A stretch of DNA of 64,000 nt from Macrostomum lignano (lineage: Eukaryota): the NCBI GenBank assembly GCA_002269645.1, contig NIVC01000114.1:806001-870000 (forward strand), read 5' to 3'. A program made the translations under genes and the position numbers. This document shows, one piece after another, positions 1 to 62,399 of this stretch; the stretch's first letter is position 1, and each line of letters starts with the position of its first letter. The notes beneath the pieces are model-generated. The model did no database searches. It saw only the letters and a list, made by a program, of their open reading frames with translations, and was not told where the DNA came from.

Positions 1-1274
1 TCCTGCATACCTGCATACTGTACTTTACAATCGTAGGTACGGACTGATAATGTCTCTCAAAGCGATCCCACGTTCGGAATTCGAAGTCAGTCAGACCAGG
101 CTGACTGACGCCATCAAGTTCTCGTTGCTCTGAAGGTCTTGCAGAGAACTCCAGTATACGATCGATTAAACGGCTGCGTTACAACACCAGATCTAGGCTT
201 CGATCGCACACAATTCATGCCATATGGTGACTAATGACGGCTGCTCCAGCATGATGAAGCTTGATGGAGTGCTGTTAGCGCAAAACTGAGTCTGTTGGCA
301 ACACACTTGATGTCACCAACTAAAATGAAATGCGACGGCGTCAAAAAAAAGAATCCACAGCGGCTTTTCTCATTTAGTGCTCACAGCCGAACCCTGAAAC
401 CCGAGCCCATGCTGACAGGGCCAACTTTAAAAAAAAACTAGCCTGATATTTTGCACAGTACTCAAAGCTTGCCATCAGGTCACCTTCCTATGTTCTACAG
501 GTAAGCTGCCCCCAAATGACCCGAGCTTACAAGAGTTGTCGATCAGTTGGAAGAGCTGGTTGATACTGATGCTAGAGGACCCAGGGCGAGATGCTCAGTT
601 TAAAAATGAATTACAAGCATATATTTGTCTACCTCTTGTTTGTTTTCACGCAACAATAAGTTGCTTGATGATAAGAAAGCTCTATCTAACTACGAGCTAA
701 AATTTATAAAATTTTCAACATTACCTAAATTAAAAAAAAACAGAATCTTTGCAATGCAGTGAAATCTATGGTAAAACTTCCAGAGGCTTTGCGCATGTCA
801 GAACGCATCTGCAGCTCTCCAACAGCTCAGAATACTCACGTGGAGTTCCCGTCGCTGCAGACGCCGCCGTTCTGACAGGGCCCTGACAGGCAGTAGTCAG
901 TGTCCACTGAGCAGTTCCTGCCCTCCCAGCCTGTGAAGCAGCTGCAGCTGTAGTTTTTCACCAAGTCTGAGCACAGGCCGTTGGTGCAGGGCTTGCTGGC
1001 GCAGTCATCAATGTTGTTTTAGCACCTGTCACCTGTGAATCCCGTGTCTGTGCAGTCGCAGGTGAATCTGAAATTCAAGCAGAAAACTCGGCACTATAGT
1101 TCGGCTGTTCAGCGTTTCCATCGGCAGTTATCGGTGTTAAATTTTCCCAACCATACAAACGACGGTTATAAAACTCGGAGTAGGGTTTTATAGTTTCAGA
1201 GTCGTAATTAAACGGTAGATATTAGTTTAAGTAGCCGCTACAGAAACAAAATTTAGAATCGAAACAGGAAAGTA

Positions 1275-3459
1275 CCCTCTGTTAAATAAACCAGATAACA
1301 TCACAAGATAACTTTCGCTCAAACAAGATAACATGCCCTATTCCGGTTATGCAAAATGTTATCTTGTATGAATCCTGTTTGCGTGACGAAATCTTACGTT
1401 TCCTTGTTTCAAACAGGATTCACTGAACAGGTAACAGTCGGGTAATTCATGCGAAAAAAAGCCGGAAGGCATTGACATCAAATTTCGCAGTAAAGAAGCG
1501 TATAAAAAGTTGGTGCTTCAAGATGTTGTGAGTAGCATCTATATTTAACAGAGGGGTGTCATTTGTAAGCGCCTTATACAAACTAAACGGTAGATCAACA
1601 GGAACGGAAACTTCTGGAGAACAGTGTGGCATACGTCTGAGTTTCGGGAGTCCAGTAACGACTACTGTATTGACTTGTTCGAGGTTTTACTAGCACCCGA
1701 CAAGATTACCGACACTCGTAGTCTGTAACGACTACTCTCTTGACTTTATCTGCTCACGGCTGGTGCAACTGCAAACGCCTTAGACAAACCAATGGAGCAT
1801 GTACCGATAAAAATCGGATTAGCGTCTATCTTAATAGGAAAGCTGCTTTGCATACTGGGCCAGTTAGAGCTATTTGGAACTATGCCACAGTCTCCGTCTA
1901 GACACCCAGCTGTGCCAAACAATTATGGTTGGCTGACTCATGCTTCTAAGCGTCAAATATGACGATAGAATCATTCAGCCCGTTGACACACTAAGCAGCT
2001 GTGATAGACTACATGCCAGTGGAAGTCAAACCTCTTGCACACAATCAGGGCGCAACAATTTTTCAATTGTCACCTGTACGGAGGATGGGCACAGCCTCAC
2101 ATTACGGACGCTACAGTGCCTCCGAAAAGCAGATCAATTCAACTTGCAATTTCGAGGCTTTATTACCCCTCGGATTTAAGATTGACAAATCAAAGTGACT
2201 ACTCTTAGCAGCTGCCTTGAGCCACAACAGACGCGAGGATTGATTACCCCTCGTAGGTCAGCGTTTTCAGTCAACTGCTAAACTCTGATTCATCGGTTGA
2301 AGGGTGGTTCCATTGTCAAAAATCAGCCGCGCGCACTCATGAGCCGGACTATTATCCTAAAGTCTCACTTACGAATAACCAACCATTATCCCTCGCTGGT
2401 GGCCATAAACCAAAACTGCAGACGCTTTAGACAACCCAATTGAGCATGCTCTACGAGCTAGCAAGAGCTAAAATAACATCTGTCTTAAAAAAGATAATGA
2501 TACCGTAGAACTGGGCTTGAAATGGGCTATCACCGGCAGAGAGGGTGGGCACGGCCTCACATTACGAGCGCTAGCGTTTGCTGATATGGCACTTTACCCC
2601 TCGCAGGTCAGCATAGCAGCTGCCTTGAGTCCCAACAGAAGCGAGGATTGATTATCCATCGCAGGTCAGCATAGCAGCTGCCTTGAGTCCCAACAGAAGC
2701 GAGGATTGATTATCCATCGCAGGTCAGCATAGCAGCTGCCTTGAGTCCCAACAGACGGAAGACCAGTCTTATCCGTAACTTCATCGAGATGACGAGATTC
2801 AGGTCAATGGGAGCTGAACCCTGTGGATTTTCCGGATCACTTAGTCTAGATCACTGAGGAATTCCGACTGAACTCCAAAAATCTCATCCAGAACATTTTC
2901 ATTGAGACAACCTGAAATTTGGGTCCATACAATCAGAATTCAGCAGTGTTCCAGGTGAAAAGTACAATGGGTTCTTACAGACCGGATAACACAAAGGCAT
3001 TTTTGAAATCTTTTTCCATTATCTGGTTTGCAAGCCAGATTCGCATCATGTTATCCGTCATATTTCAGATTCACACAGGTTTCTTACAGACCAGATAACA
3101 CACAGTTATCTTGATTTAAATCTTGTATTGTTACCAGTATCTGATTTTCAAACAAGATTCGCGCCATGTTATCCTGTAAAATTCCGATTCAAACAAGATT
3201 CGGTCAACCAAGATAACAGAGAATTATCTGGTGGCGAATATTGTACTGTAATCTGATTTCTAAGCAAGATTCAGGCCATGTTATCTGGTGAAATTCACAT
3301 AACTCACCAGATAACAATCAAACCAGATAACACTAATATTACCTGTTGACGAATCTGGTGGTTTCACCAGTTTCGCACGACAAACAAGGGATATCGGTAG
3401 TGAATTTGACAAGATTCGCAAATTATCTTGTGGTGTTATCTGGCTTATTTACCAGAGGG
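1275..3459. mobile_element. Non-autonomous TIR DNA transposon, EnSpm/CACTA(CMC)-like
   Basis: ~45-bp imperfect TIRs (CCCTCTGTTAAATAAACCAGATAACATCACAAGATAA vs reverse complement of the right end CCCTCTGGTAAATAAGCCAGATAACACCACAAGATAA). Flanked by TA (or GTAC) duplication. Many subterminal AGATAAC/GTTATCT and AAGATTC repeats. Absent from paralogous introns. Superfamily inferred from CCC termini, short TSD and subterminal repeats. Confidence 0.75.
2601..2756 (+). repeat. 58-bp tandem repeat (~2.6 copies) plus a dispersed copy at ~2207-2262
   Basis: Unit CAGCATAGCAGCTGCCTTGAGTCCCAACAGAAGCGAGGATTGATTATCCATCGCAGGT starting at 2609, 2667 and 2725. Confidence 0.9.
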
Positions 3460-3499
3460 TACCTATCTCGATACTTTACTAACGAAAATTGAAGAACTC

Positions 3500-3885
3500 A
3501 ACCGCAGGCACATCAGGGTGGTAACCATGGCCCTCTCATGCCAATACTGTTTTGCCAGACATCGCTACCTCCAGGTAAAAATCGCCAGTGAGGAAAGCCC
3601 TTTGTGTCTCTCCGGTGTTGAGAATGCGGAGCACTTCATCTGTGAATGCCCGCCCTACAAAAGACAGGCTCACCTGCCTCGGCCAGAACCCAATTTTTTC
3701 GATGCTTTCAGGACTGGGAATTTCTGCCAGATCGCCCGCTATCTTATTGTCTACCATCCTGCGGTTCCCCCTGCGCGACACCGCAGCACCAGCTGCCCGT
3801 GGTCGCCAGAGGTTAGCGGAATGGGCGTCGACGCCTCTCCGCTGCATTCGCGGATGCCCAGAGCCCCCTGCAGCTGAGTCTAATC
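3500..3885 (+). mobile_element. 3' end of a non-LTR retrotransposon (I/R1-group-like C-terminal Cys/His motif), intronic
   Basis: Frameshifted GHG..FARHRY...SPLCLSGVENAEHFICECP motif, then a 3' UTR; sister copies end in (TCAAG)n. Antisense to the host gene. Confidence 0.65.
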
Positions 3886-4328
3886 AAGAAGAACTCACGT
3901 GCCGTTGCCATCAATGCACCTGCCGCCATTGAGGCAGGCGCCCGTTGGACAGTCGTTGTGGTTGATGTTGCAGTTCCTGCCCTCCCAGCCTGTGAAGCAG
4001 CTGCAGCTGTAGGCATTCACCAAGTCTGAGCACAGGCCGTTGGCACACGGCTTGCTGGCGCAGTCATCAATGTTGATCTCGCAGTCGGTGCCTGCAGCAG
4101 ATTGCAAAATCGAAAGGAAAGAAAAATAATCAGAGACTTCAGCTGAGGCATTTCTGTATGAATGCCGTCCTGACTGGCTTGTGTCCTGACACCACTGATC
4201 AGTTGACAATTCTTATTTTTTACAATGCGGAGAATTGCTTTACGCGTAGCTTTGCCGAAATTTACTTTTTAACCAATGTAAATGACGAGGAGGAAAAATG
4301 AAAATAACTCATCTGTTTTGAAGGGGCT

Positions 4329-4590
4329 GTGAGATGGTGGATGGGATCTGTGAGATGATGGATGGGATCTGTGAGATGATGAATGGGATCTGTGAGATAA
4401 TGGATGGGATCTGTGAGATGATGGATGGTATCTGTGAGATGGTGGATGGAATCTGTGAGATGATGGATGGGATCTGTGAGATGATGGCTGGGATCTGTAA
4501 GATAATGGATGGGATCTGTGAGGTAATGGATGGGATCTTTGAAATGAAATGATGGATTGGATCTGTGAGATTAAAGATGGGATTTTGGAG
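4329..4590 (+). repeat. 21-bp minisatellite type A (GATGGGATCTGTGAGATGATG), intron 2 of gene A
   Basis: About 12 direct copies, interrupted by a 1-kb insert; the last unit resumes near 5594. Confidence 0.95.
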
Positions 4591-4592
4591 AT

Positions 4593-5593
4593 TGTAACAG
4601 TCACTATTTTTGCCTATCATTTTACGTATACCGCCTTAGTAAATACGACTATTTTTCAAAATCGCTAAAAACATCTCTGTGCCTGCATAAATAAATCTTT
4701 TATGCCGTTAATATTAAATCTTAGTATCGATTAGTAGCCTACAGTATAATCTAGTGTTTTTATTAGTTTAAACGCGTACGCCATATTGATTATGTTTTAT
4801 ATATAAGCAAGAGAATAAATCGAGAAGGAGAATAACTTTTTCCTCCGCCAGCCTGGCTATAATTAAGGCCTGCTTTGCGGTTGTCACCGAACATTGTTCT
4901 AAAAATAGACTAGTCTTAGTCATTTAAAGCGCTCCGCCTTCCCTCTCCTGCGAAGCTTGTACAGTTAGAAGTGTTCAACACTTCCCTTCCCCCTATTACC
5001 CGCTCCCCGGGACGTTCAGTCCTACCCCGAGTAATTGCCCTCCAATCGCCCGCCTCTTCTGCCCTCCCCCCCTTTTAGTGGATAGTCTGTCTGCTCAGGT
5101 GTACAGCCTTATTCCCTCAGACGTACAGTCTGCCCCAGCATCCCCGCTCCCAACCCTTCTTTGTAGAAATCTCCCATATTCATTAGGCGGATTGCCTTCT
5201 TACAATGCTATATTAGACGGACAATTTACTTATGCCAGCATTCCCTATTAGTGTTTAGAAATCCCCCATTAGTGCGCTTTTCCAGGCAACTCCGATCCAT
5301 CGCGAAGCCCTTAATTCCCCTCTCCCATCTATATTCCCCGGACTGAGAAGAAAATTGTGTCTTGCCACTCGGACACACCCACGCTCCAGGAATACTCCTT
5401 TCAGTAGGCTATTCCAAACATTTCCTCCCGAATCCCCGAGTCCCAACTTAATTTCCCAACCCATAGCACAGTTTTGGTGATTCCCAGTGAACAGTGAAAG
5501 ACCCCTGTAACACTTTTGGTTGCAGCGAATACCTCCAACAGTTTCTGTAGCTAAACGGTGGGATAAAGCTATAAATAAACACCCCCTACAACA
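4593..5593. mobile_element. Probable solo LTR (~1 kb) inserted in minisatellite A
   Basis: TGTAACAG...CTACAACA termini; flanks AGAT/AGGT (4-bp TSD with one mismatch); absent from the paralogous array at 51805-52447. Confidence 0.55.
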
Positions 5594-6806
5594 AGGTGAT
5601 GGACGGGATCTCTGAGAGGCTGTACGAGTTTTGTTAGGTGTCTTATTGTATGGAATGATAGTATTCGTTTGTTAGACAGACATCAAGATAAGATTTCGGG
5701 ATTTTTACGAGCTAAGTCAATTGTTAGCATTAATATTATTCTTTATAAATTTTCAGAAAACAAACTTTCTGTAAAAAAATCCCACATAAAAGCAGCCAAT
5801 ATACTTTTCAATTGAGTTGATCTGGTTCAGCCTAACTCAACAATTTAAAAAAATTATTCGGATAATAGTAGTTCTAAAACATTTTTTAGAGTTTCAAATT
5901 TTGATTTGCAGCAGGTCACCCACCTGTGTAGCCGGGAACGCAGCTGCAGTGATACCAGGGGCTCGCGTCTGTGTTGCTGCAGGTGCCTCCGTTTTGGCAG
6001 CGACTGCCTGAGTATGTAGCACAGAAGTCTATTCTATTGGTGCAATATGTACCAGTGTACGCGTCAGGGCACAGACACGGAGGAGTGCTTGACGTCACAC
6101 CACCCGGCCAGCAAATGCCGCCATTCTTGCAGTCGCCCTCGCTGCAGGCGGCTCGCCTCGTCCGCGCCAATTCGTTGGCGTCCTCGTCAAAACCTTCATA
6201 TTGAAAATCAGAGGAAAACTTATTAACTGTCATTTAAGCTACCTTAAAACCCCAACTCACCAGCGGATAAGTCTTCTGAAACCGAAGCACACGAAGCTCG
6301 ATGCCAAGCCAGCGTCAGAACTAGAATTAGTGTCGGCAGTCGAATTTCGGACGACATTCCGGACGAGCTCAGAGCCGAGGCTTATCTAGTTTGAAACTCG
6401 CACAAGTTTGAGCAGCTGAAAATCAAATTGAATCAAATTTGAATCAATTGAAATAGAAGGAATTAGTATAGCTGTGCTGAATATGCTACTTATGAGATAA
6501 TTAATATTGAAATAAGAATCAGATTTGCCATACTGGTTAATAAAAAATAAAGTAATTAAAATCAGTCGCAGGTATATTTTCATTTCAAGCAGCTGGCTGA
6601 GGCTCAGGCAAAACAACTTTTTCGACTCTAAAAAGCACTGAATTATTTTGTGACTGCTGAAAAATGCACATTGAAAATGCATTGAATTTCGCTATTTAAA
6701 ACCGGCTCGGCGGTTTTAAACTGAAAATTTTCAATTTTAAGGTCGATCATATTTTTAGACAATTTTGAACTTAGGCTACTACTTATAAAGATTTTCAGTA
6801 GTCAAG

Positions 6807-8246: not shown

Positions 8247-8941
8247 CTGACAAGTGCAGTGGATTTGTGAAATTGAGAACTCCTTGTAGTTGTATGTTTT
8301 AATATTGTGAAAGTGTGAATAACATGTCCAATCACTGCCTTACGCGGTGATTAACTGATAAATTACTTTGAATTCTTTTGAAAACCTGACATCACAATAT
8401 GATACCTTGACACTCAGAGGGCGCCCAATGTAACACCCTGACATCATGTTCAACACTGTTAAACATTTCAACATTCTAACATGGCTCTGTTAGACACTCT
8501 AAAACCTAATTAGACACCCTGATTCCCATTTAGACAACTCGCTACCAAATTAGAGGCGCCCCTGGTAGAATAAAGAAAAGACTGAGTGAGCCAAGGACAT
8601 TCCACTGTAACAGGAAAGCAAAACAAAATTTTCTAACCAGCGGAGCAAGCCTTGGCACCAACCAGACACCAGCAGACAAACCTCGGAGCCAAGGAATAAC
8701 TGAAAGTGTAGATTGGCTGGCCAATCGCTGTTAGCGGGGCCGGGGGGCTTGTCGTCGCCCGTGTTTGGGGGTGCTTGGTCCGGGGGTGGGTGCGCCGCCC
8801 CCGGGGCGGGGGTGGGTGTCTGTGGGGCCTTTTTAGCCCCGTGCGTTGTGCCCGCCTCAGCCTAACTCTCCTCGCCAGCTTGCATGCGTTTTTGCGATTT
8901 TTGGCTAGCCCAACTTAATTACTCAACTTACTCTGGGTACT

Positions 8942-9631
8942 ATGAGTTTGCGTAGGATGACTGTAAATCAGCTACGTGAAGAATTGAGTGATAGGGGCCT
9001 GAGCACGCACGGCTACAAGAAAGACCTGGTCAGCAGACTCTCCACTGCGATGAACCAGAGCGAAGCAGCTAGTCGGCGGGAACAAGCGGCGTCAAAGTCC
9101 GCGGAGACCGACAACGAAGGTCGGCGGCAGCAGCAGCAACAACGGCTGGAGGCAGGGGAGGCGCTGGACCTAGCAGAGCTCCGGCGGAAGATAGCTAGCC
9201 TGGAATCGGAGACGGCAGCAATGCGCCAGCAGCTGGAAGGCCGATTTAGACCAGGTGAGGTGGACCAACAGCTTCTTAATGAGCCCTCTGATTGTAGTAG
9301 CGACATGAATATCCCGAGTATGCTCAGAGGTCCCGGGTTCGAGACCAGGCTCGAGCCCTCAGTAGCTCAACTAGGGTTACGGGCGGCACCACTCGTCGTT
9401 GCGGATTTCTGCGGTTGCGACCCTCGGACGGCGCCGGCGAGTCGTAGGGAAAAGGTGCTGCATCCAACCGCCAATCAGCCTAAACCCGAATCGCTGGGAA
9501 TTTTGCTTCGGCCCACATCAACGTTAAGGAGACCATCACACCTGTCCTCAGCATCCTCGCGGCCCCGGGCCGCTTCGCCGGTGCGGACATCGTCGTGTAC
9601 AGCGACAGCTCGGCGGCTGTCGGTGCGCTGA
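8942..9631 (+). CDS. ORF1/gag-like protein with N-terminal SAP domain and coiled coil; 3' part runs out of frame across a deletion
   Basis: LRRMTVNQLREELSDRGLSTHGYKKDLVSRL matches the SAP consensus; followed by a helical Q/E/L-rich segment. Confidence 0.7.
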   Translation: MSLRRMTVNQLREELSDRGLSTHGYKKDLVSRLSTAMNQSEAASRREQAASKSAETDNEGRRQQQQQRLEAGEALDLAELRRKIASLESETAAMRQQLEGRFRPGEVDQQLLNEPSDCSSDMNIPSMLRGPGFETRLEPSVAQLGLRAAPLVVADFCGCDPRTAPASRREKVLHPTANQPKPESLGILLRPTSTLRRPSHLSSASSRPRAASPVRTSSCTATARRLSVR

Positions 9632-9780
9632 ACAAGCTCAGCTCGCCATGTAACGACGTCAACCGGCTCCTGCACACGCTGTCGCTTGCCTGCGACGCGT
9701 GGGGTCTGCGGCTGCGGGCCTTTCACGTTCCGGGCGCCTTCCAGGTCCTGGCGGACCCGGCCTCTCGCCTTGCTTCTAGA
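9484..9780 (+). pseudogene. DIRS-type RNase H fragment (C-terminal half)
   Basis: HINVKE...DIVVYSDSSAAVGALNKLSS...LRAFHVPGAFQVLADPASR fits the DIRS RNase H pattern (HINxLE...VxxDN...HIPGxxNxxADxLSR). The N-terminal DAS motif and the whole RT are missing. Confidence 0.75.
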
Positions 9781-9839
9781 AGCGGGGCGCAGAATTTCTT
9801 TCTCCGCTTCTACCGTAGCCTGCATGATTTAGCTGCTGA

Positions 9840-10913
9840 ATCCTGCTGCATCTCGCGCCACGCGCTCTGCCCTGCCTCCGCCTCGCTTTTGCTTTTGCAG
9901 GTCCGGCGCCTCCTGCCTCCCGCCTACCCGGGCCGCTCCTTCGCTTTCTCGCCGACGCCTGGGCTCCTAGTACGAGGGCATCGTACGCTTCAAACCTCAA
10001 ACAGTGGCAGCGCTTCTGCAACCTCGAAGGTGTTCAGCCACTAGCGGCGTCCCCGGTGCACTTGGTCGAGTATGTGCGACGCCTGGCTAAGCGCGGCGTG
10101 GAACCCGGTAGCCTCGGTGGAGACCTGGCGGTTATCAGCTGGAGCTTCAAGCTGGCGCAACTCCCCGACATCACCAAGTCCGGCCTGATCGATCTGGCAG
10201 TTAAGAGCGCCAAACGGACAAGCGGCCATTCAGTCAAGCAGAAAGACCCCATCACCCCGGCTGTTCTGCTTTCACTGGCAAACCAGGTGAACCCAAGAGA
10301 CCCTGCAGACGCCGCCTTTTGGGCCGCCGTGCTCTGCTGCTTCTGGGCGCTTCTCAGGAAAGCAAATGTCTGCGGGCGCCACTCCATTCTCGTCAGCGAC
10401 ACTCAGGCCGATAGTCAGTGCTGGAGACTCCGAGTTCGACAGTCGAAGACCAACCAATGCGGACAAGACTACCAGGAGGCGGTGCTGCCAGTACTCGGAA
10501 ACCACCCACTTTGTCCTGTCCAAGCCCTGCGGCGGCATTTTCAGGCTAACAAGCTGCGGTCTGCGACGGCGCTCACTCGGCTGTTTTGCGTCCACATCGC
10601 CGGAAGCTGGTGCCCGATGTCATCGCGTCAATTCGACCGCCGCCTCGCTCGGGCTCTGACAGATGCGGGTTGGGCGGCGACAGCTTTCTCGGGCCACTCT
10701 CTACGACGGGGTGGCGCCTGTCTGGCGTTCGACAGCGGCCTCGACGTGGAGCAGATCAAGCGGCTGGGCGGCTGGCGCAGCGGCGCCGTTTCACGCTACC
10801 TGCCGCAGTCGGGAGGTTGCCTCCGTCTCCTGCGCCCAATCGTCAACCGTGTGCTGTCGGCACCTCCTAGCGCTCGCCTGACTCGCCCCGTCGCCGTGTA
10901 CCCTACTCTTTGA
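9840..10913 (+). CDS. Tyrosine recombinase/integrase (DIRS/Ngaro type), intact reading frame
   Basis: Stop-free frame from 9840 (no ATG; the ORF track starts at GTG 10056). N-terminal APSTRASYASNLKQWQRFC; catalytic set LLRKAN (R), SKTNQ (K), GHSLRRGGA (HxxR), GGWRS (W), SRYL (Y). Confidence 0.9.
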   Translation: MLLHLAPRALPCLRLAFAFAGPAPPASRLPGPLLRFLADAWAPSTRASYASNLKQWQRFCNLEGVQPLAASPVHLVEYVRRLAKRGVEPGSLGGDLAVISWSFKLAQLPDITKSGLIDLAVKSAKRTSGHSVKQKDPITPAVLLSLANQVNPRDPADAAFWAAVLCCFWALLRKANVCGRHSILVSDTQADSQCWRLRVRQSKTNQCGQDYQEAVLPVLGNHPLCPVQALRRHFQANKLRSATALTRLFCVHIAGSWCPMSSRQFDRRLARALTDAGWAATAFSGHSLRRGGACLAFDSGLDVEQIKRLGGWRSGAVSRYLPQSGGCLRLLRPIVNRVLSAPPSARLTRPVAVYPTL

Positions 10914-11444
10914 TCCCTTTGTTCGGGTTTTTTGGGATGTTTTGCGCGTGCTATCCAATTGTTGCCTTTGTTCTCTCCCTCCGGCCGTTCCGCTATGTCT
11001 CGTTGAAAGGCCATGGCAGATCGGACCTTCCGTACAGAGTCCGGTTGCTGCGCTCCAGACAGACAGTTTTTGTCTTTCCTTGGTGCAAGGATTTGGTGAG
11101 GAGTCGACAACGTTCGATTCGCAGTGTTTGCCTAAAAATTGTTGGTTGGCGAATTAGCGGATTCTGATGGATTGAAATTGCATTATTTGAAGCAGAAACA
11201 ATCACATGTTACCATAGAAACCAGCCTGGCAGTTGCATTGGTTGCGGCAGAGGTGGGACACTGGCCACCGTTTTCACACTTGCAACCTGTGAAAAGTTTA
11301 CAATTGAGTTATGTGAATAAAAGCTTAGCTCCTTATTCAAGGTTCTAACTGTGTACCACTTAGATAAAAGGAGATAAATAAAAATTTTGTTATGCATCTT
11401 TATATAACAAAATAGATTTATATAACAAACATCTTTATTTAACC

Positions 11445-41800: not shown

Positions 41801-42333
41801 TCGCCCTCGCTGCAGGCGGCTCGCCTCGTCCGCGCCAATTCGTTGGCGTTTCTGTCAATCTCTGCAAAACATACAAGCATACAAACAACTCATTTGTAGA
41901 ATTTTTAAAAAATATAAATAAAGCATATATTCTGATTAGTAAAAATAGCAATTATTTTCCATAGTGCAGTTCAAGGCCGAAAAAGTTAGCCTAAGACTCA
42001 ATGACATACAGTAAGTTTTATTTTAACAAACTTATTCAGTTTGGCGCCGAAAACAATACAAATAAAAGCTAAAACGCACTTCTAGGTATTTGAATTGTCG
42101 CAAAGCATTTTTCGTTGAGCTCATGAAAATTATCAACTACATTACTTGATACCATGGCCTGAAACGTCACATCTGGCACAGCTAATGCCTTTCACTTCTC
42201 TCAAGTTCGAATAGTTTTAGAAAACTGCCAGAGCGGACTCACCATCTGGTCGTCTGTCATGCGAAACCGAAGCAGCCACAGCTTGGTGCACAAAAACGAG
42301 CAAAACCAGCTGCTGTGGCCAACACCACGACAT
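38895..42333 (-). CDS. Gene D: truncated paralogue, predicted secreted EGF-only protein (~290 aa)
   Basis: Exons 42333-42243, 41861-41592, 40293-40101 (hybrid E3/E5), 39213-38895. Homology to C/E breaks at ~38990 (GAVCK|APALRSLVL...CGM*); LamG, TM and tail are deleted. Confidence 0.7.
40735..41200 (+). repeat. 21-bp minisatellite type B, intron 2 of gene D
   Basis: About 22 copies. Confidence 0.95.
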
Positions 42334-47700: not shown

Positions 47701-50700
47701 AAAGCTCTAAATAAATTTATTGCATTGCCTACATTATCAAAACAAAGACTGCAGATCCTTACGCAATAAAATGAAATCAACGGCAAAAAGTTTTTAATCT
47801 GAGGCTTTGAGTACACCACATTGCATCTGAAGCTTCTCAAAAGCTTAGGAAACTTACGTAGAAATTTAGAAATTCACGTAGAGAAAAATAAGTAGTTAAA
47901 ACATTCTGATCTGAGGCTTTGCACATGCCGAAACCCATCTGCAGCTTCCCAATGGCTCAAACACTCACGTGGAGTTTCCGTCACCGCAGACGCCGCCGTT
48001 CTGACAGGGCCCTGACAGGCAGTAGTCAGTGTCCACTGAGCAGTTCCTGCCCTCCCAGCCTGTGAAGCAGCTGCAGTTGTAGTCAGTCGCCAAGTCTGAG
48101 CACAGGCCGTTGGCACAGGGCTTGCTGGCGCAGTCATCAATGTTGTTTTGGCACCTGTCACCTGCGAATCCCGTGTCTGTGCAGTCGCAGGTGAATCTGA
48201 AAAGAGGATAAAATTCAGCTCTATTGTAACAAAAATGCTCAAAGTTTTTCTATCGGCGGTTTTGGCGATAAATTTTAATAACTGTTACAAACAAAGATTG
48301 TAAAATTTGGAAAAGGGTTTTATAGTTTTGAAATTATACCCTCACCGCAACCGTATGGTAGTTCAAGTAGCCACTACAGAAAAATAGTTTCAAATAGAAA
48401 CTGGAAAGCGGTGAAAGGAGTACCAGGGGTGACAAGGCTAATAGGGAACCAGCTCGTCACTTTACTAACGAAAACTGAAGGGTTGGCGTGTCAGGCCATG
48501 GCTGTTTTGTCAGAATTTACTACCGTCAGGAACAAATCTCATTCTGCATCTCCGGTGTTGAGAAAGCGGAGCACTTCATCTGTGAAGGCACCGCCTCTAC
48601 TTGGGACAGGCTCACCTGCGTCGACCCCAACCCGATTATTTCCGACGTTTTCAGACCCGAGAATTTCTGCCAACTCGTCTGCTACCTGAGGGCTACCGGG
48701 CCAGCAAATACCCACCTCCGGGACTCTTTGGAGGGAGACCGCCCTGCAGACACTGGCACCACACGCCTCCCCGCTGCGTTTGGGTGCCCGAAGCCCCTGC
48801 AGCTGAGTCAAGTCAACAAGGAGAACTCACGTGCCGTTGCCATCAATGCACCTGCCGCCATTGAGGCAAGCGCCCGTTGGACAGTCGTTGTGGTTGATGT
48901 TGCAGTTCCTGCCCTCCCAGCCTGTGAAGCAGCTGCAGCTGTAGTTTTTCAGCAGGTCCGTGCACAGGCCGTTGATGCAGGGCTTGCTGGCGCAGTCATC
49001 AATGTTGCTTTGGCACCTGTCACCTGTGAATCCTGTGTCTGTGCAGTCGCAGGTGAATCTGAAAAGAGGATAAAATTCAGCTCTATTGTTACAGAATTGT
49101 TTGGAAATCCGAGTTTTTTATTGGTGGTTCCGGTAATAAATTTTAAGAACTTTTACAAACGAAAATTGTAAAACTCGGAGTAAGGTTTTATAGTTTCGAA
49201 ATCCTACTTACACCGCAACCGTATATTAGCTGCAGTAGCCACTACAGAAACAAACTTATCATTTGAAACTGGAAAGCAACCAGCCCGTAACTTTAGTAAA
49301 AAATTGGAGGATGTGCGCGTCAAGTCATGGCTGTCTTGTCAGACATCGCTGCCTCCAGGAAAACCCATTTTGTCTATACGGTGTTGAGAATGCGGAGCAC
49401 TTCATCTGTGAATGCCCCGCCTTTACTCAGGACAGGCTCTTCTACCTTGGCACAAACCCGGGCCTTTCCGACGGTTTCAGGGCCGAGAATTTTTTGCAAG
49501 CTCGTCCGCTACTTAAAGGCTACCGGGCTAGACTCGATCCACCCCTTGGACTCTTCAGAGGGGGACCACGGTGCGGTCACCGGCACCACCGGATCTCCAT
49601 GTGTTAAACCGCAGTACCAGCTGCCCGCAGTGGCCAGGGTTAACAAAAGGGACTTCAACGCCTCCCCGCTGCATCCAGACTCCCAGAGCCCCTGCAGCTG
49701 AGTCAAGTCAACAAAAAGAACTCACGTTCCGTTGCCATCAATGCACCTGCCGCCATTAAGGCAGGCGCCGGTTGGACAGTCGTTGTGGTTGATGTTGCAG
49801 TTCCTGCCCTCCCAGCCTGTGAAGCAGCTGCAGCTGTAGTTTTTCACCAAGTCTGAGCACAGGCCGTTAGCGCAGGGCTTGCTGGCGCAGTCATCAATGT
49901 TGATCTCGCAGTTGGTGCCTGTGAAGTTAACAGGAAATTTCAAAAATAGCAAAGAAAATCATCTTGCTTGTTCGCTTTCCTGATTCAGCACATTTTTTAG
50001 CGAAAAGTCAAATTTAAAGCGGAGAAGTCAAAGCATCAAATGCACAAAACCTCGAATGTTTCTTATCGCCTTCCAGACAGTGCAGAACAGAAACGAAAGC
50101 GGAAAGCTGAGCAATGTCACTCAAAGCAGCCTGAATATTCATGGCAACCAGAGCACCATGCGCTAAAAGCATGTCTATCATGCATGTATTATTTTACGCG
50201 TACTAAAGATGAATAGCATTGTCTCAAACTGCAGACAAATTAAGATAATATCGGCACTACAGGGGCGTAGGGGGCGCCTAAGAGGCACCAATCTTCGATT
50301 AGATCTGAGTACAATCTGAGAAGGTACGGGCTACAATAGAAAACTCGTACACATAGCCATCATAACCATAAAGTGAAAAGTCAAAATTTCTGAATGGTGG
50401 CAGGGCGAGCAGCTTCTATTTCTGGCCAGAAACTGATTTCTTCCAAGGCTTGTGCGATGAACGGAAAGAGCAATCAAAACGTGACGACAGATGGGCGCCC
50501 CTTCTCTGGGGTGGGCGCCCCTTTCTCTGAGGTGGGTGCCCCTCTCTGTGAGGTGGGCGCCCCTGTCTCTGAGGTTGTCGCTCCTGTCTCTTAGATGGGC
50601 GAACCTGTCTCTGAGGTGGGCGCCCCTGTCTCTGAGGTGGGCGCCCCTGTCTCTGAGATGGGCGAACCTGTCTCTAAGGTGGGCGCCCCTGTCTCTGAGG

Positions 50701-53208
50701 TGGATGCCCCTGTATCTGAGGTGGGCGCCCCTGTCTTTGAGGTAGGCGCTTTCGTCTCTGAGGTTGTCGCTCCTGTCTCTGAGGTTGTCGCTCCTGTCTC
50801 TGAGGTTGTCGCTCCTGTCTCTTAGATGGGCGAACCTGTCTCTGAGGTGAGCGCCCCTGTCTCTGAGGTGAGCGCCCCTGTCTCTGAGGTGAGCGCCCCT
50901 GTCTCTGGGGTGGGCGCCCATGTCTCTGAGGTGAGCGCCCCTGTCTCTGAGGTGGGCGCCCCTGTCTCTGAGATGGGCACCCCTGTCTCTGAGGTTGGCG
51001 CTCATGTCTGTGAGGTTGGCGCTCCTGTCTTTGAGGTTGGCGCCCCTCTTTTTGAGGTGAGCGCCCCTGTCTCTGAGGTGGGCGCCCCTGTCTCTTAGAT
51101 AGGCGAACCTGTCTCTGAGGTGGGCGCCCCTGTCTCTGAGGTGGGCGCCCCTGTCTCTGAGGTGGGCGCTTCTGTCTCTGGGTGGACGCCTCTGTCTCTG
51201 AGGTGAGCGCCCCTGTCTCTCGGGTGGGCGACCCTGTCTCTGGGGTGGGCGCCCTTGTCTCTGAGGTGGGCGCCCCTGTCTCTGAGGTTGGCGCTCCTGT
51301 CTTTGAGGTTGGCGCTCCTGTCTCTGAGGTGGGCGCCCCTGTCTCTCGGGTGGGCGCCCCTGTCTCTGAGGTGAGCGCCCCTCTTTTTGTGGTGGGCGAC
51401 CCTGTCTGAAGAAAGCGCCCCTGTTGTCGTGTCTTAGCAATAAGAAAGACTCTTTTCTATTTGAGAGAGCTCTTAGCTGAGCGTAGAATACGAGACTTCA
51501 ACTGGTAGCCAAACCGGCCTTTATATTATATTGAATATGACCGACGGCAACATGCCGCCTACATTAGGAGTACAGCGTGATCAAACTTCAAGCTTTAGCA
51601 TATAGAATAGAAAGATGCAACGTGCCGCGCGTGCACACTAAGTACATTGGGAATGAGTACACTAGATATTAAGTACGCAGATACGCAACGCGAGTCAGAG
51701 ATAGTTGATGAGCCCCGCCAAGCGGCGCCACACCTGTCTGTGAGGTTGGCGCCCCTGTCTCTGAGGTGGGCGCCCCTGTCTCTGAGGTGGGCGCCCCTGT
51801 CTTTGAGATCTGTGAGATGATGGATGGGTTCTGTGAGATGATGGATGGGTTCTGTGAGATGATGGATGGGATCTGTGAGATTGAGGATGGGATCTGTGAG
51901 ATGATGGATGGGATCTGTGAGACGATGGATAGGATTTGTGAGATGATAGATGGGTTCTGTGAGATGATGGATGGATTCTGTGAGATGGTGGATGGGATCT
52001 GCGAGATGATGGATGGGATCTGTGAGTTGCTGGATGGATTCTGTGAGATGATGGATGGGATTTGTGAGATGATGGATGGGTTCTGTGAGATGGTGGATGG
52101 GATCTGTGAGTTGCTGGATGGGATCTGTGAGTTGCTGGATGGGATCTGTGAGTTGCTGGATGGATTCTGTGAGATGATGGATGAATTCTGTAAGATGCTG
52201 GATGGGTTCTGTGAGATGCTGGATGGGATCTGTGAGATGATGGATGGGATCTGTGAGATGATGGATGGGATCTGTGAGATGGTGGATGGGTTCTGTGAGA
52301 TAATGGATGGGATCTGTGAGATGATGGATGGGATCTGTGAGATGAAGGATGGGATCTGTGAGATGAGGGATGGGTTCTGTGAGATGATGGATGGGATCTG
52401 TGAGATAATGGATGGGTTCTGTGAGATGATGGATGGGATCTGTGAAAGGCTGTACGAGTTTTGTTGGGTTTCTGATTGTATGGAATGATGGTATTCGTTT
52501 GTTAGATAGACATCGGGATAAGATTTCGGGGTTTTGAAGTCAATTGTTAGCTCTCCTACAGTCTTGATGTGATGTTGTTATATTATTCTTTATAAATTTC
52601 AGAAAACAAACTTTCTGCTAAAGAAACTTCCACATTAAAAACAGCCGATACACTGTCCAATTAAGTTGATCTGGTTTAGCCTAACTCAACAATTTTACAA
52701 ATTTATTTCGGATAATAGTAGTTCTAAAACATTTTTGAAGTTTCAACTTATGATTTGCAGCAAGGGTCACCCACCTGTGTAGCCGGGAACGCAGCTGCAG
52801 TGATACCAGGGGCTCGCGTCTGTGCTGCTGCAGGTGCCTCCGTTTTGGCAGGGACTGCCTGAGTATGTAGTACAGAAGTTTATTCTATTGGTGCAATAAG
52901 TACCAGTGTACGCACCAGTACACAGACACGGAGGAGTGCTTGACGTCACAGCACCCGGCCAGCAAATGCCGCCATTCTTGCAGTCGCCCTCGCTGCAGGC
53001 GGCTCGCCTCGTCCGCGCCAATTCGTTGGCGTCCTCGTCAGAACCTTCATATTGAAAAGCAGTGGAAAACTTATTAACAGTCATTTAAGCTACCTTAAAA
53101 CCCCAACTCACCTGCGGATAAGTGTTCTGAAACCGAAGCACACGAAGCTCGATGCCAAGCCAGCGTCAGAACTAGAATTAATGTCTGCAGTCGAATTTCG
53201 GACGACAT
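44745..53208 (-). CDS. Gene E: short Crumbs-like receptor with A-type head, ~892 aa
   Basis: Exons 53208-53112, 53044-52775, 49918-49726, 49058-48831, 48196-47969, 47052-46566, 46492-45921, 45851-45652, 45551-45421 (TM), 45333-45262, 45174-45100, 44870-44745; total 2679 nt. Confidence 0.88.
48480..48815 (+). mobile_element. LINE 3' fragment (intron, gene E)
   Basis: Duplicate of 31970-32310. Confidence 0.65.
49310..49712 (+). mobile_element. LINE 3' fragment (intron, gene E)
   Basis: SHGCLVRHRCLQENPFCLYGVENAEHFICECPAF; duplicate of 32810-33205. Confidence 0.65.
50485..51805 (+). repeat. 21-bp minisatellite type B, intron 2 of gene E (interrupted by a 308-bp insert)
   Basis: About 45 copies in two blocks; runs directly into type A repeats. 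Confidence 0.95.
51425..51732. mobile_element. Small solo-LTR-like insert (308 bp)
   Basis: TGTCG...GCCACA (TG..CA) termini; exact 5-bp TSD CCTGT (51420-51424, 51733-51737). Confidence 0.75.
51805..52447 (+). repeat. 21-bp minisatellite type A, intron 2 of gene E
   Basis: About 30 copies of GATGGGATCTGTGAGATGATG and variants. Confidence 0.95.
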
Positions 53209-54259: not shown

Positions 54260-54473
54260 CTGACAAGTGCAGTGGATTTGTGAAATTGAGAACTCCTTGT
54301 AGTTGTTTGCTTTAATGTTGGGTAAGTGTGAATAACATGTCTAATCACTGCCTTGCGCGGTGTTTAACTGATAAATGACTTTGAATACTTTGACAACCTG
54401 ACATCACAATATGATAACTTGACACTCAGAGGGCGCCCAATGTACGTGACACCCTGATATTGAGAGGACCTAA

Positions 54474-54533: not shown

Positions 54534-54611
54534 TAGCTTTGCTCCTTATTCAAGGTTCTAACTGTGTACCACTTAGATAAAAGGAGATAATAAAAAAATT
54601 TTTTATACATC

Positions 54612-54900
54612 TTTATTACACCTGCCCCAATTGGGCCAGATGTGCAACCGACAGCTCAGCCGCAGCTATTGCGCGGCGCATCTGAAGGCTGCGTACGGCT
54701 GTTCAGTCCAAGGACTGGGGGGTCGCCACACACACCCTCAATCATCCCAGCTAATCTGGCACCCATTTTACAGCTGAGCGAACTGAAGCAATGCAGAGTC
54801 AATTGTCTTGCTCGAGGACACAAGATGTTCCTAGTAGATCTAGAGTCGAACCCCAGACCTTGCAGTCGTGAGTCCAACGCTCTAACTACTCGTCTAAAAG
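54612..54900 (-). mobile_element. tRNA-derived SINE (duplicate of 11445-11700, more complete 3' end)
   Basis: Same head, core and tail. Confidence 0.8.
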
Positions 54901-57900: not shown

Positions 57901-58739
57901 CGCTTCGAAGCTTGGGCGCGAACAAAGGCCGCACCGCCGGCAGAGTAAAATTAATAAAAAGCACGCAAAAGCGTAATAATGATACTACTCATTATTCAAC
58001 ACATAAAAAAATAGTTGACCTTTTGTTGATTTCTAGAGTAAAAGTTTAAATATAAAAACTTATCGGGAATAAAATTTGAATGAATTGCGCTGAAAAATAA
58101 AAAGCGGAAAAAATAGATCGAAATAAAAATGTATAGATTAAGAACATATACAGTTAGAGAAGTCGCTGATCAATACGATTTTTGGTTAGTAACGTTGGAA
58201 TATTCCATGTTCAGACTTGCTAGGCCTGTCAGTCATGCACACTCTCTGTGCATTGGGTGTTAGCCCTCACAGGTATATGAATCGGGCGACAACCCACCGG
58301 CCTAAATAAATGTTACTGCGCAAGGAACCGAACTAGCTGTGGCGTTGTGGCGCGGGAGTGAATCGGCTGCCCCGCCATAAAAAAATTCATGGTTCCATGA
58401 AAAAAATGTCTTAAACAAAAACTAAGAGATAATCAGATGTCAGTTATAACAAACAACATTGTTGATGGTTTGTTTCATATATCGCACAGTAATGTTTCAC
58501 GCACGTTGGATTGAACTGAACTTGGCTGGATTGTTACTCAAATTTTCGTAAGTGCAGTCATCGGTTGACATGTCATATACACCAGCATAAGGTGACCCTG
58601 ACTCTTCAGTCGGCTGAGCGCCGTCACTGAGCTGCTGCAATGTAATTATAACTCATATCAAATTATAGTTAGTTAGAAGTACGGCAGAATATGCACTATT
58701 AAATTAATTATTATTTAAAATAGAAAAACTTACGTGCTG

Positions 58740-61700
58740 CTAAATGCGATCAGCGGTAGCGTAAACAGCTTGGCCCTCGTGCTGCGACAGGGAGTTACCC
58801 TAAGAAATAAATAAATGTTGGTAAATTTCTCAGAGCAAAATTTCAAAAGGTGGAAAAAGTACTTAGTCAAAAAGTTTTTTCCTAACCAATAAAATTTTAA
58901 CGCTGCTGAAAATTGCAAACTGCAAACACCTCAAATTCATGGTATTTGTGTTAAAAACACTGTTAAAACGCTTAGGGTTGTAGCCTAGGGTAAGAGCGTC
59001 GGACTCATGAATTGAAGGTCGGGGTTCGATTCCGGATCCCGCTGAAACAATTTTCATTTTTGAACAAGACGCTCAACTCTGCTTTGCTAAAAAGTTCACC
59101 CACCAGCTGTAAAATGGGTGCCAGCATTAGCTGGGGTAATTGAGGGTGTGTGACGACCCCCCAGTCCTTGGACTGAACAGCCGTACGCAGCCTTCAGATG
59201 CGCCGCGCAATAGCTGCGGCTGAGCTGTTGGTTGCACATCTGCCCATTGGGCAGGTGTAATCAATTATTATTATTGTTACCATTACTAAGCGTTCAACAA
59301 AGCAATAAGAAGCTAACCTGAGTAATATCTTTCTGTGCCAAAGATGTTGAACCGCTTGTTAAGGAGCCTTTACCTAACAGTTGCCTCTAAAAAGTTTAAA
59401 AATAAAACTCAAAATTGCTTTTTTAAGTTATTTTTCAAAACATTTAGTACATACCAATAAATAAATATACATGCCATTACAACTTACCGATCGAAATCGA
59501 ACAACCAAAATAACAATGCCACACGTAAAAGCCGCAGACAGTAAGGCACTGACCACAATCAAGATTGAATAGAAACCAATTGAGCCGATAAAGCCTGTGG
59601 ATGTTTCTGATACTGATAAAGAAGCTGGAAAATAATGTATGATTCAATGTTTTGCCAAATACAATACTGCGTCGCGTGTAAAGTGTTACGAATTTCAAGA
59701 CGGAATCTTACCATACGATTTCAGACACAGATACCCATCAGCTAATTCGTACTTAAATGACCCGTTAAATGGCCACGGCAGTATTCGATTGTTATAATTT
59801 GCTGAGTGGCTTCTCTCTAAACACACTTCGTCGCTACCACACGGATTCGGGCTGCATTCTGGGTTGTCAACTGAGCAGTCCGTTCCAGAATAGCCGGGGT
59901 GGCACATGCAACTGAAAAAAGTCTGATTGCATTCAAACCTAAGTATTATTTAATAATGCCATAATTAGCAAAAAATACTCACGAAGCCTTTGACGACGTG
60001 CACGTTCCTCCGTTTCTGCATGGCAAATATACCTCACAAATATCAAGCGACGAGCTCAAGACGACACCTGAAGACTCACTGGCTGCCACTGCTCCTGACA
60101 GAGCAAGGTAAAATGGGGAAGAACTCAAAATCAGTGGCTTAGCCTCATTCAATCTCGGATGGGAAATTATTCCCCGAAATCCAGTCACGCCTGAAGGCAT
60201 CGCAGCCCAGATGCTGGCTGGAAAAACAGGCAGAGATCGCTTTGATCTGCCGCCGGTGCTTGGCGGTGATGCGCCGCTGAAGCCGCCGATGATGAGCTGG
60301 CCTGACAGCTGCGGTAGCGGACTCGCACTGCTCAGCGATGCCGAACTGACTGAAGATGACACTGACAGCGACAGCGAGCGACCCGATATCGACACGGAGA
60401 TATTCACAGAGACGAAGCTGCCGGTGGCCACCGAGTCTGAGGACGTCAGCGCTGCGATGAGGGAGCCGTTGCTGTGCAGTAACTGGGCGGACAGACGGCC
60501 AGAGTGATCAATCTGAAAAGAATAAAACAAATACTGACTTTACCAGATTTCACTCAATCTAGAAAAAAACACTGAGGACACTCACTGTAACGAGCAGTCT
60601 CGGAGTGGTCGCCGAGTCGCTCGGGTCGCCCAGCAGCAGCAGAAACGCTCCTCGAGACAAAGTCACCAGCCTCAGCTCAATCGTCCACGAGTCTCCGCCA
60701 TATACACTTGACACACCTGCTGCAGACGCGAACATCGCTGATGACACGCTGCCGCCCACACCCAGTGAGAACGATGGAAGCTCAACGGAGCAGCGCAGGC
60801 CTCCGAAGCCCGCAGCGCAGTGGCACACAAAGTCGTTCCACACATCTGAGCACATCGAGCTCGTCTTTTCTTCACAAGGCGACGGGCTGCCGCACTGCAC
60901 CGACCGACTGCAGACTCCCCAGGTCGCGCTGCTCGACTCCGCCGTGGTCCCCGAGGTGACCAATGTCGAGTCGTTCGACACGAGCCGCAGGTCTCTCACG
61001 CAGCCGCGGAAGCCGCCACCGCCGTCGATGCCGGATCCGCTCTCGCCGCCGACACGAACTGACATTCGACTGTTCGGCTTGAATGAGTCCGACAGTCCGT
61101 CGACCAGCTGTGCTCCAGGCAGCTGACTCACTCCTGACTCACTGCGACTCAATGTCGCACTGCCATTGGTCAGCGAGACCGACAGCGTCAGCCAATCAGT
61201 AGAGGCCAAGCTGTCGCTGATTGGCCAATCAGCTCGACCAATCACAGACGACGATGCATTGAAGAACAACAGCACGAGACTGGAGTCGTGAGCGCCGACT
61301 CGGATGTCTCCCCAGTGAGACGAGAGCCGGACCAGATCGAAGTGGGCGAGACTCGTGCGGAACGACAGCTCGAAGGTGCAATCAGTTGTCGTGCTCAACT
61401 TGGAGCTGTCCAGCAAGACTCTGAAGGCCGTGCTTCCGTTGAATGACGCCAGAGTGGTCTCGTTGCACTGCGGTCCAGACCAGCCAGGCTTGCAGGTGCA
61501 GCGATAGCCGTGAGCAGGTGACGGCAGCTCGCGAAGAAGCAGAGGTTTGCACTTCTCGTTCATTTGGCACGGGCTGGAGTCGCAGCCAGTCAGTCTGACG
61601 CTGCAGTTTTTGCCTCCGAACTCAGCGGGGCAGCCGGTGCAGGCATAATCCGCTACCAGGTCCTTGCAGACGGCTCCGTTCTGACACGGCTGTCCGAAGC

Positions 61701-62399
61701 GCTCGCACTCGTCGATATCGACTGAGCAGGTCGGGCCCTCGTAGCCGGGCAGGCAGTGGCAGGTGAATGAGGCCAGGTCGTCCGTGCAGCTCGACGCGTG
61801 GGCGCACACGCTGCGGTTGGTGGCCGGGTCCAGACAGTCGTTCGGGTTGATCTCACATGTGTCTCCGTAGATGCCTTTGCGTTGCAGTTAAATAAAGGAA
61901 AAATTGCTATAGATTAGAATCTATGCAGTCAATACAGTCAATGCACAGGATCTCCTCACCTCTCGGGCAGAGGCAGACGAACCCGGCAGCCAGCGCATAG
62001 CTGAAGCTCTCATTGAATGGCGAAGGCAGCGATGAGTTTCCATACAAATCCTGGTTGCTGCGCTCCACACAGGCGGCACCGAACTGGCACGGATTCAGCG
62101 AGCAGTCCGGCACGTCATTGGAGCAGGTCTTTCCCGAGTAGCCGCTGAAGCAGCTGCAGCTGAAGTCTCTGAGCCCGTCAGTGCAGGTGGCGTTGTGGCT
62201 GCACGGGTTGCTGGCGCAGTCGTCAATGCGGCTCTGGCAGTTCGGTCCGTTGAAGTCGGTGGCAGAGCAGTCGCAGGTGAACCTCCTGACACCATCGATG
62301 CACCTGCCGCCGTGCTTGCACGGACTTGATGCGCAGTCATCGATCTTGGAGCTGCAGATGTCGCCTTGGAAGTCGACGCGAGAGCAGTCGCAGGTGAAA
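58740..62399 (-). CDS. Gene F: long Crumbs-like receptor, 3' part (5' end beyond the window), tail truncated
   Basis: Exons 62399-61960, 61874-60586, 60512-59983, 59911-59712, 59624-59488 (TM), 59386-59318, 58799-58740 ending in TAG where B has CAG. Confidence 0.8.
58975..59284 (+). mobile_element. tRNA-derived SINE (duplicate of 16352-16660)
   Basis: Same head, core and ATT tail. Confidence 0.85.

Follow-up and report, generated by a model that had tools for sequence, protein, structure and literature searches.

A tandem array of Crumbs-like genes for probable surface receptors with replaced cytoplasmic tails in Macrostomum lignano

The DNA analyzed here (the window; 64,000 nucleotides, assembly GCA_002269645.1, contig NIVC01000114.1, positions 806,001–870,000) comes from the flatworm Macrostomum lignano and carries six head-to-tail genes, A to F, on its minus strand, which encode predicted proteins composed of a signal peptide, an EGF array, LamG domains, a transmembrane segment and a cytoplasmic tail (Table 1). 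These genes probably belong to a tandem array of at least eight Macrostomum-specific Crumbs-like genes that evolves by birth and death, through segmental duplication, unequal crossing-over and gene conversion, and the most likely account of the predicted products is a family of Crumbs-like surface receptors whose cytoplasmic tails have been replaced. An earlier note, made from the sequence of the window, had described six paralogs of differing architecture and had suggested that they form a family of recognition receptors. The paralogs and their differing architectures are borne out by spliced GT-AG models, all on the minus strand; the recognition reading is not supported (see below). No publication describing these genes was found in the literature searched.

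Gene models were constructed from open segments, canonical GT-AG sites and phase conservation, with guidance from three transcript-based relatives (P0001, P0011 and P0017). At high identity, the largest exon matched M. lignano proteins only. The window has patchy GC content and short open reading frames (ORFs), and its minus strand holds all open segments with the six-cysteine EGF pattern as well as all 'CLE.S' motifs of the interrupted EGF. Type I membrane glycoproteins (signal peptide, EGF repeats, LamG, transmembrane segment) are predicted for the intact genes, of which there are two types. The long type has about 13 EGFs (including two interrupted EGFs), two LamG domains, a transmembrane segment and a tail of 96–99 residues, whereas the short type has about 10 EGFs, one LamG, one interrupted EGF, a transmembrane segment and a tail of 92–93 residues. 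B is a complete long-type gene (signal peptide, RTRR site, about 13 EGFs with the two interrupted EGFs, LamG1, LamG2, transmembrane segment, 96-residue tail), and C a complete short-type gene (signal peptide, about 10 EGFs, one LamG, an EGF, an interrupted EGF, transmembrane segment, 93-residue tail with two YAN motifs).

Three of the six window copies (B, C and E) are intact, with all 35 splice junctions and all cysteine patterns preserved; A and F contain nonsense mutations, early in the former and in the tail of the latter, and D is the remnant of a deletion. A is a long-type gene of 12 exons, and its exons 5–12 lie beyond window position 1 (L001 9285-12765; GenBank partial model P0001). 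Its body outside the window is that of an intact long-type gene (L001, 100% identical to window 7786-1 where the two overlap), and apart from the in-frame TAA its reading frame is intact over 1220 codons. Truncation of A as a mere effect of the window edge was considered and rejected: although A leaves the window, a genuine in-frame stop is present as well. The description of A as stop-truncated in the earlier note is thus correct, with the refinement that F also carries a stop. F is a long-type gene of 10 exons (GenBank PAA90329.1), with exons 1–3 outside the window at window-equivalent positions 68147-65289. Its premature TAG costs the last ~50 residues, leaving a tail of 46 residues, and the last exon (58634-58500) is now untranslated. 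The bounds that the note had given for the cluster (840-62399) are real as exon ends, but they are not gene ends, as both A and F are cut by the window.

In D, the signal-peptide exon and exon 2 are intact, and exon 3 is a hybrid of EGF exons 3 and 5. Homology of its fourth exon to exon 6 of the other copies ends at about position 38990, in the middle of an EGF, and is followed by 31 unrelated residues and a stop, so that D is left without LamG, transmembrane segment and tail. The DNA downstream of D resembles the spacer normally found after the tail of a family gene. Given the loss of homology within an EGF and this post-tail-like spacer, D is classed as a deletion derivative.

Crumbs is a polarity determinant that has been deeply conserved and kept at low copy number, and it is the short tail that defines its function. 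Members of the Crumbs family (Drosophila Crb, vertebrate CRB1/CRB2, and the proteins of Lingula, Capitella and Trichoplax) are, like the predicted products of the window genes, type I membrane proteins with EGF arrays and LamG domains, and an interrupted EGF (C-ERS...FSY--AAG[FY]VC-C) upstream of the first LamG is common to both. In a one-way search with full-length B, the matches that followed the M. lignano paralogs were to Crumbs/CRB1/CRB2, which cover 80–98% of B at ~29–31% identity, with E values down to 1e-226. Where a match with 80–98% coverage has a curated name, this is in the great majority of cases Crumbs or Crumbs homolog 1/2, from insects, Lingula, Capitella, Trichoplax, fishes and amphibians, whereas matches to Notch, Jagged, fibropellin and EYS reach only the EGF part (~42–43% of B). 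The interrupted EGF has one strong site in Lingula Crumbs (residues 487–555; 42% identity, E 1e-15) and one in a fish CRB1-like protein (residues 579–647; 47% identity, E 4e-19); both alignments are without gaps inside the insert, and the site lies before the first LamG, as in B. The ectodomain of the window genes is colinear with the central part of Crumbs. Derivation of this ectodomain from Crumbs, as the earlier note had proposed, is thus supported at the sequence level, both by the best full-length matches and by the unique, colinear interrupted EGF.

EYS (eyes shut) likewise combines extracellular EGF and LamG domains, but it is secreted and lacks a transmembrane segment, and its matches are confined to the EGF part, ~43% of B. 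When B and the relative P0012 were scanned with Pfam, only EGF-type and LamG families were detected, with none of the LNR, NOD and ANK domains of Notch or the MNNL and DSL domains of Delta. In UniRef, relatives bear names ('Delta-like', 'Notch', 'Cubilin', 'REJ domain', 'CG32796') that were assigned automatically and find no support in their domain content.

The cytoplasmic end of the window genes departs from that of Crumbs. From Trichoplax to vertebrates, the Crumbs matches share an almost unchanged tail (...KRATRGTYSPS...KPPPEERLI), and its FERM-binding motif is kept in 16 of the 18 Crumbs-type matches inspected. By contrast, in the tails of the window copies that were inspected, both the FERM-binding GTYSPS and the PDZ-binding ERLI are absent from every one; B ends in ...SFQCA, A in ...SIQLA, C in ...NQGSQ and E in ...NQGF. 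The window genes as modeled accordingly lack both of the features by which Crumbs function is defined, and the absence of the ERLI tail implied in the earlier note holds for all copies. Further differences concern length and number. The Crumbs tail has ~37 residues, whereas the window-gene tails have 92–99 residues and tyrosine motifs; A, B and F have two LamG domains, C and E have one and D has none, as against four LamG stretches in Lingula Crumbs; the extra, membrane-proximal interrupted EGF is found in window genes, unlike Crumbs; and Crumbs genes number one to three and are dispersed, whereas the window family has at least eight tandem copies. That these are ordinary Crumbs orthologs or paralogs still acting as apical polarity determinants would agree with the homology and colinearity of the ectodomain, but with the FERM-binding and ERLI motifs gone, tails far from ~37 residues and only one or two LamG domains, this is very improbable.

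Departures from the canonical Crumbs end are on record. The CRB3-CLPI isoform is a Crumbs protein with a non-ERLI end (PMC2064851), and Caenorhabditis elegans has a small lineage-specific Crumbs family (PMC4359734). However, CRB3-CLPI results from alternative splicing and the C. elegans family consists of three dispersed genes, whereas the window family is a tandem array with long, replaced tails.

In the predicted window proteins, the Crumbs tail is replaced by two new tail types. The long-type tail (A, B) contains a conserved SPYAGVY[DE]TSTDD.TY[ED]NL, i.e., YxxV-x9-YxxL, which resembles an immunoreceptor tyrosine-based activation motif (ITAM). This ITAM-like motif (YAGV-x9-YENL) has been lost from F through its stop and is absent in C and E. 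The short-type tails (C, E, G; for G see below) contain two YAN (YxN) motifs, and NPxY occurs in no tail of the window copies. When 1.84 billion cluster representatives were searched exhaustively by HMMER with the transmembrane segment and tail of B, only three clusters matched, all from M. lignano, and the long-type tail therefore appears to be lineage-restricted, within the limits of public data. The tyrosine-motif tails and the lineage-specific expansion that the earlier note had described are in agreement with these results.

The intact proteins would be cell-surface adhesion or signaling receptors that no longer act via the Pals1/Stardust-PATJ polarity complex. Any signaling would proceed through phosphotyrosine motifs, ITAM-like in the long type and two YxN in the short type. 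A comparison can be made with Draper, an EGF-repeat receptor that signals via an ITAM and a Shark/Syk homolog (PMC4503800). Draper, CED-1 and MEGF10 are single-pass proteins with many EGF repeats and a double-tyrosine ITAM-type tail, to be compared with the long-type YAGV-x9-YENL. However, Draper has an EMI domain and NPxY, and the window genes are without both (for EMI, there is no Pfam match); moreover, the window genes have LamG domains and an ectodomain homologous to that of Crumbs, not Draper, so that the likeness to Draper is functional speculation only. In a more specific and improbable proposal, the long type would be a Crumbs ectodomain re-wired to Src-family kinase and Syk-type (Shark-like) signaling via a flatworm-specific ITAM-like tail, and the short type would be linked to Grb2-type signaling via YxN; the array would then consist of Macrostomum-specific surface receptors for damage, non-self or mating-related cues, which owe their diversity to the shuffling of exons and modules at minisatellites in introns and not to point-mutational hypervariability.

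EGF domains pass the Pfam thresholds in every copy (B: 172 bits), and the membrane-proximal LamG2 of full-length B is recognized as Laminin_G_2 at 30.3 bits (cut-off 22.9). Pfam yields no match for LamG1, the additional long-type domain (B 554-729), when this region is scanned alone. The C-terminal hallmark of LamG1 can be aligned with genuine LamG domains of Lingula Crumbs at their ends, and a search of the PDB with an AlphaFold model of the region (mean predicted local distance difference test score, pLDDT, of 47; 50–69 across the domain) returned LamG/LNS folds only, i.e., laminin alpha2 LG5 (template-modeling score 0.65), neurexin, agrin and pikachurin. A furin-type RTRR directly precedes the first EGF cysteine in all copies (B codons 42-45, exon 2), and RSKR is present in an inserted loop of the membrane-proximal LamG in all copies that have this LamG (B codons 927-930, exon 7); 'KRSKRQ' occurs at the equivalent LamG place in the distant relative P0005. 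The two sites suggest removal of a propeptide and possibly ectodomain processing similar to that of Notch at S1, and the intact proteins are probably processed by proprotein convertases.

The array extends beyond the window. A complete short-type gene, G (PAA90330.1), is located at 80.7-95.9 kb (window-equivalent) on the same contig, and an extra short-type copy, H, is located between G and F, also outside the window (L003 25255-35254; record 876662-886661; window-equivalent ~70.7-80.7 kb), as is the reverse transcriptase of a non-long-terminal-repeat (non-LTR) retrotransposon. A further family member (P0020) lies ~100 kb downstream on the same contig. In the older, independent ML2 assembly, a read-through prediction of 6392 residues (P0130) contains G, H, the retrotransposon reverse transcriptase, F, E, D, C and B in that order, and the identical shortened end of D recurs in P0130 and P0134. 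ML2 predictions also reproduce A (P0131, which steps around the stop), the tail of B and a second version of the array. Because the order is the same in ML2, the array is real, with at least eight members, and is not an assembly artefact. The contrary view, in which collapsed or expanded haplotypes or homeologs were mis-joined in tandem, might appeal to the known redundancy of the DV1 assembly (PMC5730564); however, the copies differ in architecture and are only 91–93% identical, they have distinct spacers and insertions, all within one PacBio contig, and with the ML2 order this view is scarcely credible.

Same-family clusters, paralogous or homeologous, are found on at least two other contigs: L002 (NIVC01000038.1:172875-196742) and a 346,538-bp contig (P0012, P0014). 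The relatives P0012/P0132 (BOX15_Mlig000039), P0014 and P0020 share with the window genes the signal peptide, the N-terminal EGF module and the core of EGF and LamG domains, at 70–80% identity. Unlike the window genes, P0012/P0132 has a third LamG and a short tail ending in ...KPVPQEVFF. Other tail types occur outside the window: P0003 has two YDVI motifs, and P0012, P0014 and P0020 all end in ...PQEVFF. BLASTP comparison of the P0012-type tail with the Crumbs tail aligned KPVPQE/KPPPEE only (E=0.23, not statistically significant), and P0012-type members may be closer to the ancestral Crumbs state. P0018 (LamG3-EGF-transmembrane segment, with the tail missing from the prediction) is an unconfirmed candidate for a canonical ERLI Crumbs.

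Self-comparison of the window shows that the copies are segmental duplicates with 91–93% identity and a mosaic structure. The body of F and its downstream spacer pair with those of B. In E, the 5′ module (signal peptide and exon 2) pairs with A and the body with C, and the switch from A-like to C-like sequence lies between the two minisatellite arrays of intron 2. The 5′ module of D pairs with B, and its 3′ part is old (69–81%). The C-B and E-D spacers (26000-27800 vs 42600-44400) are 96–100% identical, above the adjacent exons (90–98%), which suggests gene conversion or exchange that was very recent and did not extend past the spacer. Between exon 2 and the LamG part, C, E and G each have three EGF exons of 64–76 codons; A and B have two, and D and F have a single hybrid exon. 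Such variation bears the signature of unequal crossing-over between repeated exons. Modules have thus been shuffled among the copies (three signal-peptide types, one to three EGF exons, A-like or C-like halves), with switch points at intronic minisatellites and within repeated EGF exons.

Three unrelated families of 21-bp minisatellites are present, all of them intronic, in intron 2 (A–E) or intron 1 (C), and recombination or duplication switch points coincide with them. These repeats are open in two or three frames, mimic Thr/Ser/Pro-rich peptides and give rise to spurious ORFs of up to ~490 codons on both strands. A coding (ETGAPTS)n mucin stalk was considered for the 21-bp repeats and rejected: stops flank the only Thr/Ser-rich frame of B. 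The phase-1 donor of exon 2 fits the acceptor of exon 3 directly, as in the paralog prediction P0002, and no repeat segment is included in the RNA sequencing (RNA-seq)-based models (F, G, P0012, P0020) or in P0002. The stalk of variable length described in the earlier note is therefore not supported; the true variation in length is in the number of EGF exons (one to three).

Pairwise ratios of nonsynonymous to synonymous substitution (dN/dS) between copies of the same type are 0.41–0.59, and ratios by domain are 0.19–0.94. One value alone exceeds 1: the EGF located between the LamG domains gives 1.12, on the basis of 16 vs 4 substitutions. dS is 0.08–0.12, near the intron divergence of 0.065–0.077. 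The N-terminal EGF1-2 has a dN/dS of 0.45–0.56, and its protein sequence is strongly conserved save for an indel loop of 5–6 residues; the signal peptide and propeptide occur in three types. In the tails of C, E and G, dN/dS is 0.22. These values, centered on a dN/dS of about 0.5, indicate moderate purifying selection on the coding sequence. They also indicate a pattern that is not the diversifying selection expected of a hypervariable recognition surface, although diversification by module shuffling stays compatible with them.

A diversifying family of receptors for recognition (immune, allo- or between gametes), in which ligand-binding tips and stalks vary and soluble forms act as decoys, would be consistent with several features of the locus: an array of many tandem copies that includes pseudogenes, as is typical of birth-and-death evolution; the shuffling of modules between copies; the tyrosine-motif tails, including the ITAM-like one; the lineage restriction; and the precedent of Draper with its EGF repeats, ITAM and Shark/Syk (PMC4503800). 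However, dN/dS is significantly above 1 in no domain, and the supposed tips, EGF1-2, are among the best-conserved parts of the protein apart from their one indel-prone loop. The repeats of the stalk are intronic, and the supposed soluble version, D, ends within an EGF at a deletion breakpoint followed by junk residues, as expected of a remnant and not of a designed soluble form. Since variable tips, variable stalk and soluble forms all fail on checking and only the tyrosine-motif tails survive, the recognition-receptor reading is not supported by these data and is judged improbable.

The copies might instead be mostly redundant, decaying duplicates, the array being a neutral by-product of a repetitive and partly polyploid genome in which a few members elsewhere (e.g., of the three-LamG P0012 type) do the real work. 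Half of the window copies are disabled or truncated, a dN/dS of ~0.5 is above that typical of essential genes, the genome is extensively duplicated with 15% tandem repeats (PMC5730564), and B to E are without public protein models. On the other side, nearly every domain, and with them the tails of C, E and G, has a dN clearly lower than both dS and intron divergence; the splice junctions and cysteine patterns of B, C and E are all intact; and F, G and portions of A and E are represented by RNA-seq-based models. On balance, such redundancy is unlikely.

RNA-seq data assembled under guidance of the genome underlie the GenBank gene models of the assembly, whose transcript clusters were named at 95% identity (PMC5730564). 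These models cover F and G, the 5′ part of E and, for A, a 5′ part as well as the 3′ half; A is split in this annotation into a 5′ model of 334 residues and a partial 3′ model. Several points weigh against a family of functional Crumbs-like receptors. B, C, D and E as modeled have no exact match in public protein sets, and multi-mapping of RNA-seq reads among copies with 91–98% identity weakens the transcript evidence for individual copies. A dN/dS of about 0.5 would also be compatible with partly relaxed constraint on redundant copies. The identity of LamG1 depends on a structural model of low confidence, and the ITAM-like motif is non-canonical (Val at +3 and a spacer of 9 residues).

If the tandem family of Crumbs-like receptors is accepted, the array offers a natural example of a polarity/adhesion ectodomain recruited to a different intracellular output and copied at least eight times in tandem. 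The locus also shows that intronic minisatellites and repeated EGF exons can act as recombination points that shuffle gene modules. As a practical matter, public annotation of the family is fragmentary, and the older prediction merges seven copies into one protein. Transgenesis and RNA interference are at hand in M. lignano, and the role of the family is thus testable in the animal itself.

Table 1. Positions of the genes, gene parts, repeats and insertion in the window
Feature	Position	Strand	Details
Copy A, 5′ part	840..6357	-	exons 1-4: 6357-6261 (signal peptide), 6193-5924 (EGF1-2), 4091-3899, 1067-840
In-frame TAA in A exon 4	1019..1021	-	codon 203 (Gln codon in B)
Copy B, complete long type	15859..25750	-	12 exons, 1219 residues, intact
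B exons 1-6	25750-25657, 25274-24987, 23897-23705, 23103-22876, 19760-19321, 19235-17965	-	
B exons 7-12	17888-17359, 17287-17088, 17000-16864, 16762-16694, 16167-16096, 15996-15859	-	
B exon 5	19321..19760	-	Crumbs-type interrupted EGF CLERSNQALYGNSSLPSPFNDSFSYALAAGFVCLC
B exon 8	17287-17088	-	second, membrane-proximal interrupted EGF
B last exon	15859..15996	-	ITAM-like SPYAGVYDTSTDDCTYENL
Copy C, complete short type	28166..37465	-	12 exons, 889 residues, intact
Copy D, shortened	38895..42333	-	4 exons: 42333-42243, 41861-41592, 40293-40101, 39213-38895; 290 residues
Copy E, complete short type	44745..53208	-	12 exons, 892 residues, 1 LamG, intact
Copy F, 3′ part	58500..64000	-	exons 62399-61960, 61874-60586, 60512-59983, 59911-59712, 59624-59488, 59386-59318, 58799-58740
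Premature TAG in F penultimate tail exon	58740..58742	-	CAG in B, CGG in A
21-bp minisatellite, CTCTGAGGTGGGCGCCCCTGT family	24326..24588	.	intron 2 of B
CTCTGAGGTGGGCGCCCCTGT family elsewhere	34000-34685, 40710-41197, 50492-51407		in C, D and E, respectively
Second 21-bp family, CTGTGAGATGATGGATGGGAT	51807..52445	.	intron 2 of E; also 4327-4583 in A
Third 21-bp satellite, CACTCATTTTAGCAACAAGGG	35903..37195	.	intron 1 of C; ~62 copies
Insert, 2.9 kb	8444..11322	+	absent from the paralogous E-F spacer; SAP-domain ORF 8942-9631, tyrosine-recombinase ORF 10056-10913 (Pfam Phage_integrase)

The A-B spacer contains the 2.9-kb insert listed in Table 1, which, on account of its SAP-domain and tyrosine-recombinase ORFs, is assigned to the Crypton/DIRS-like mobile elements. 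Within the insert, relic pieces of an interrupted-EGF exon flank this element on the minus strand, at 10996-11208 (CLERSNRTLYGRSDLPWPFNET) and at ~8636-8914 (FSYSLAPRFVCWC), so that the element sits in the interior of that relic exon. Scans for tRNA genes and Rfam families found no RNA genes in the window.

Smaller repeated elements are scattered among the genes. A 181-bp element with 99% identity is present at 26489-26670, 38008-38188 (inverted) and 43094-43274 and has the look of a miniature inverted-repeat transposable element. Another element, of ~240 bp, is found at 11450-11688 and 54612-54886 and recurs in inverted orientation at 16367-16605 and 58990-59229, within tail introns of B and F, respectively. 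A small conserved ORF with a transmembrane-like stretch (GISSAVTIVLRVALGALGIVVLSVVAPAVF) is located on the minus strand at 8068-8298 (A-B spacer) and 54081-54311 (E-F spacer); it is used as an exon in the ML2 prediction P0130 and may be a relic stalk/transmembrane exon of a lost family member. The A-B spacer also contains a 60-bp tandem repeat (3.4 copies, 13756-13957) that has no counterpart in the E-F spacer, and its open frames, on both strands, are rich in Gly, His and Trp.

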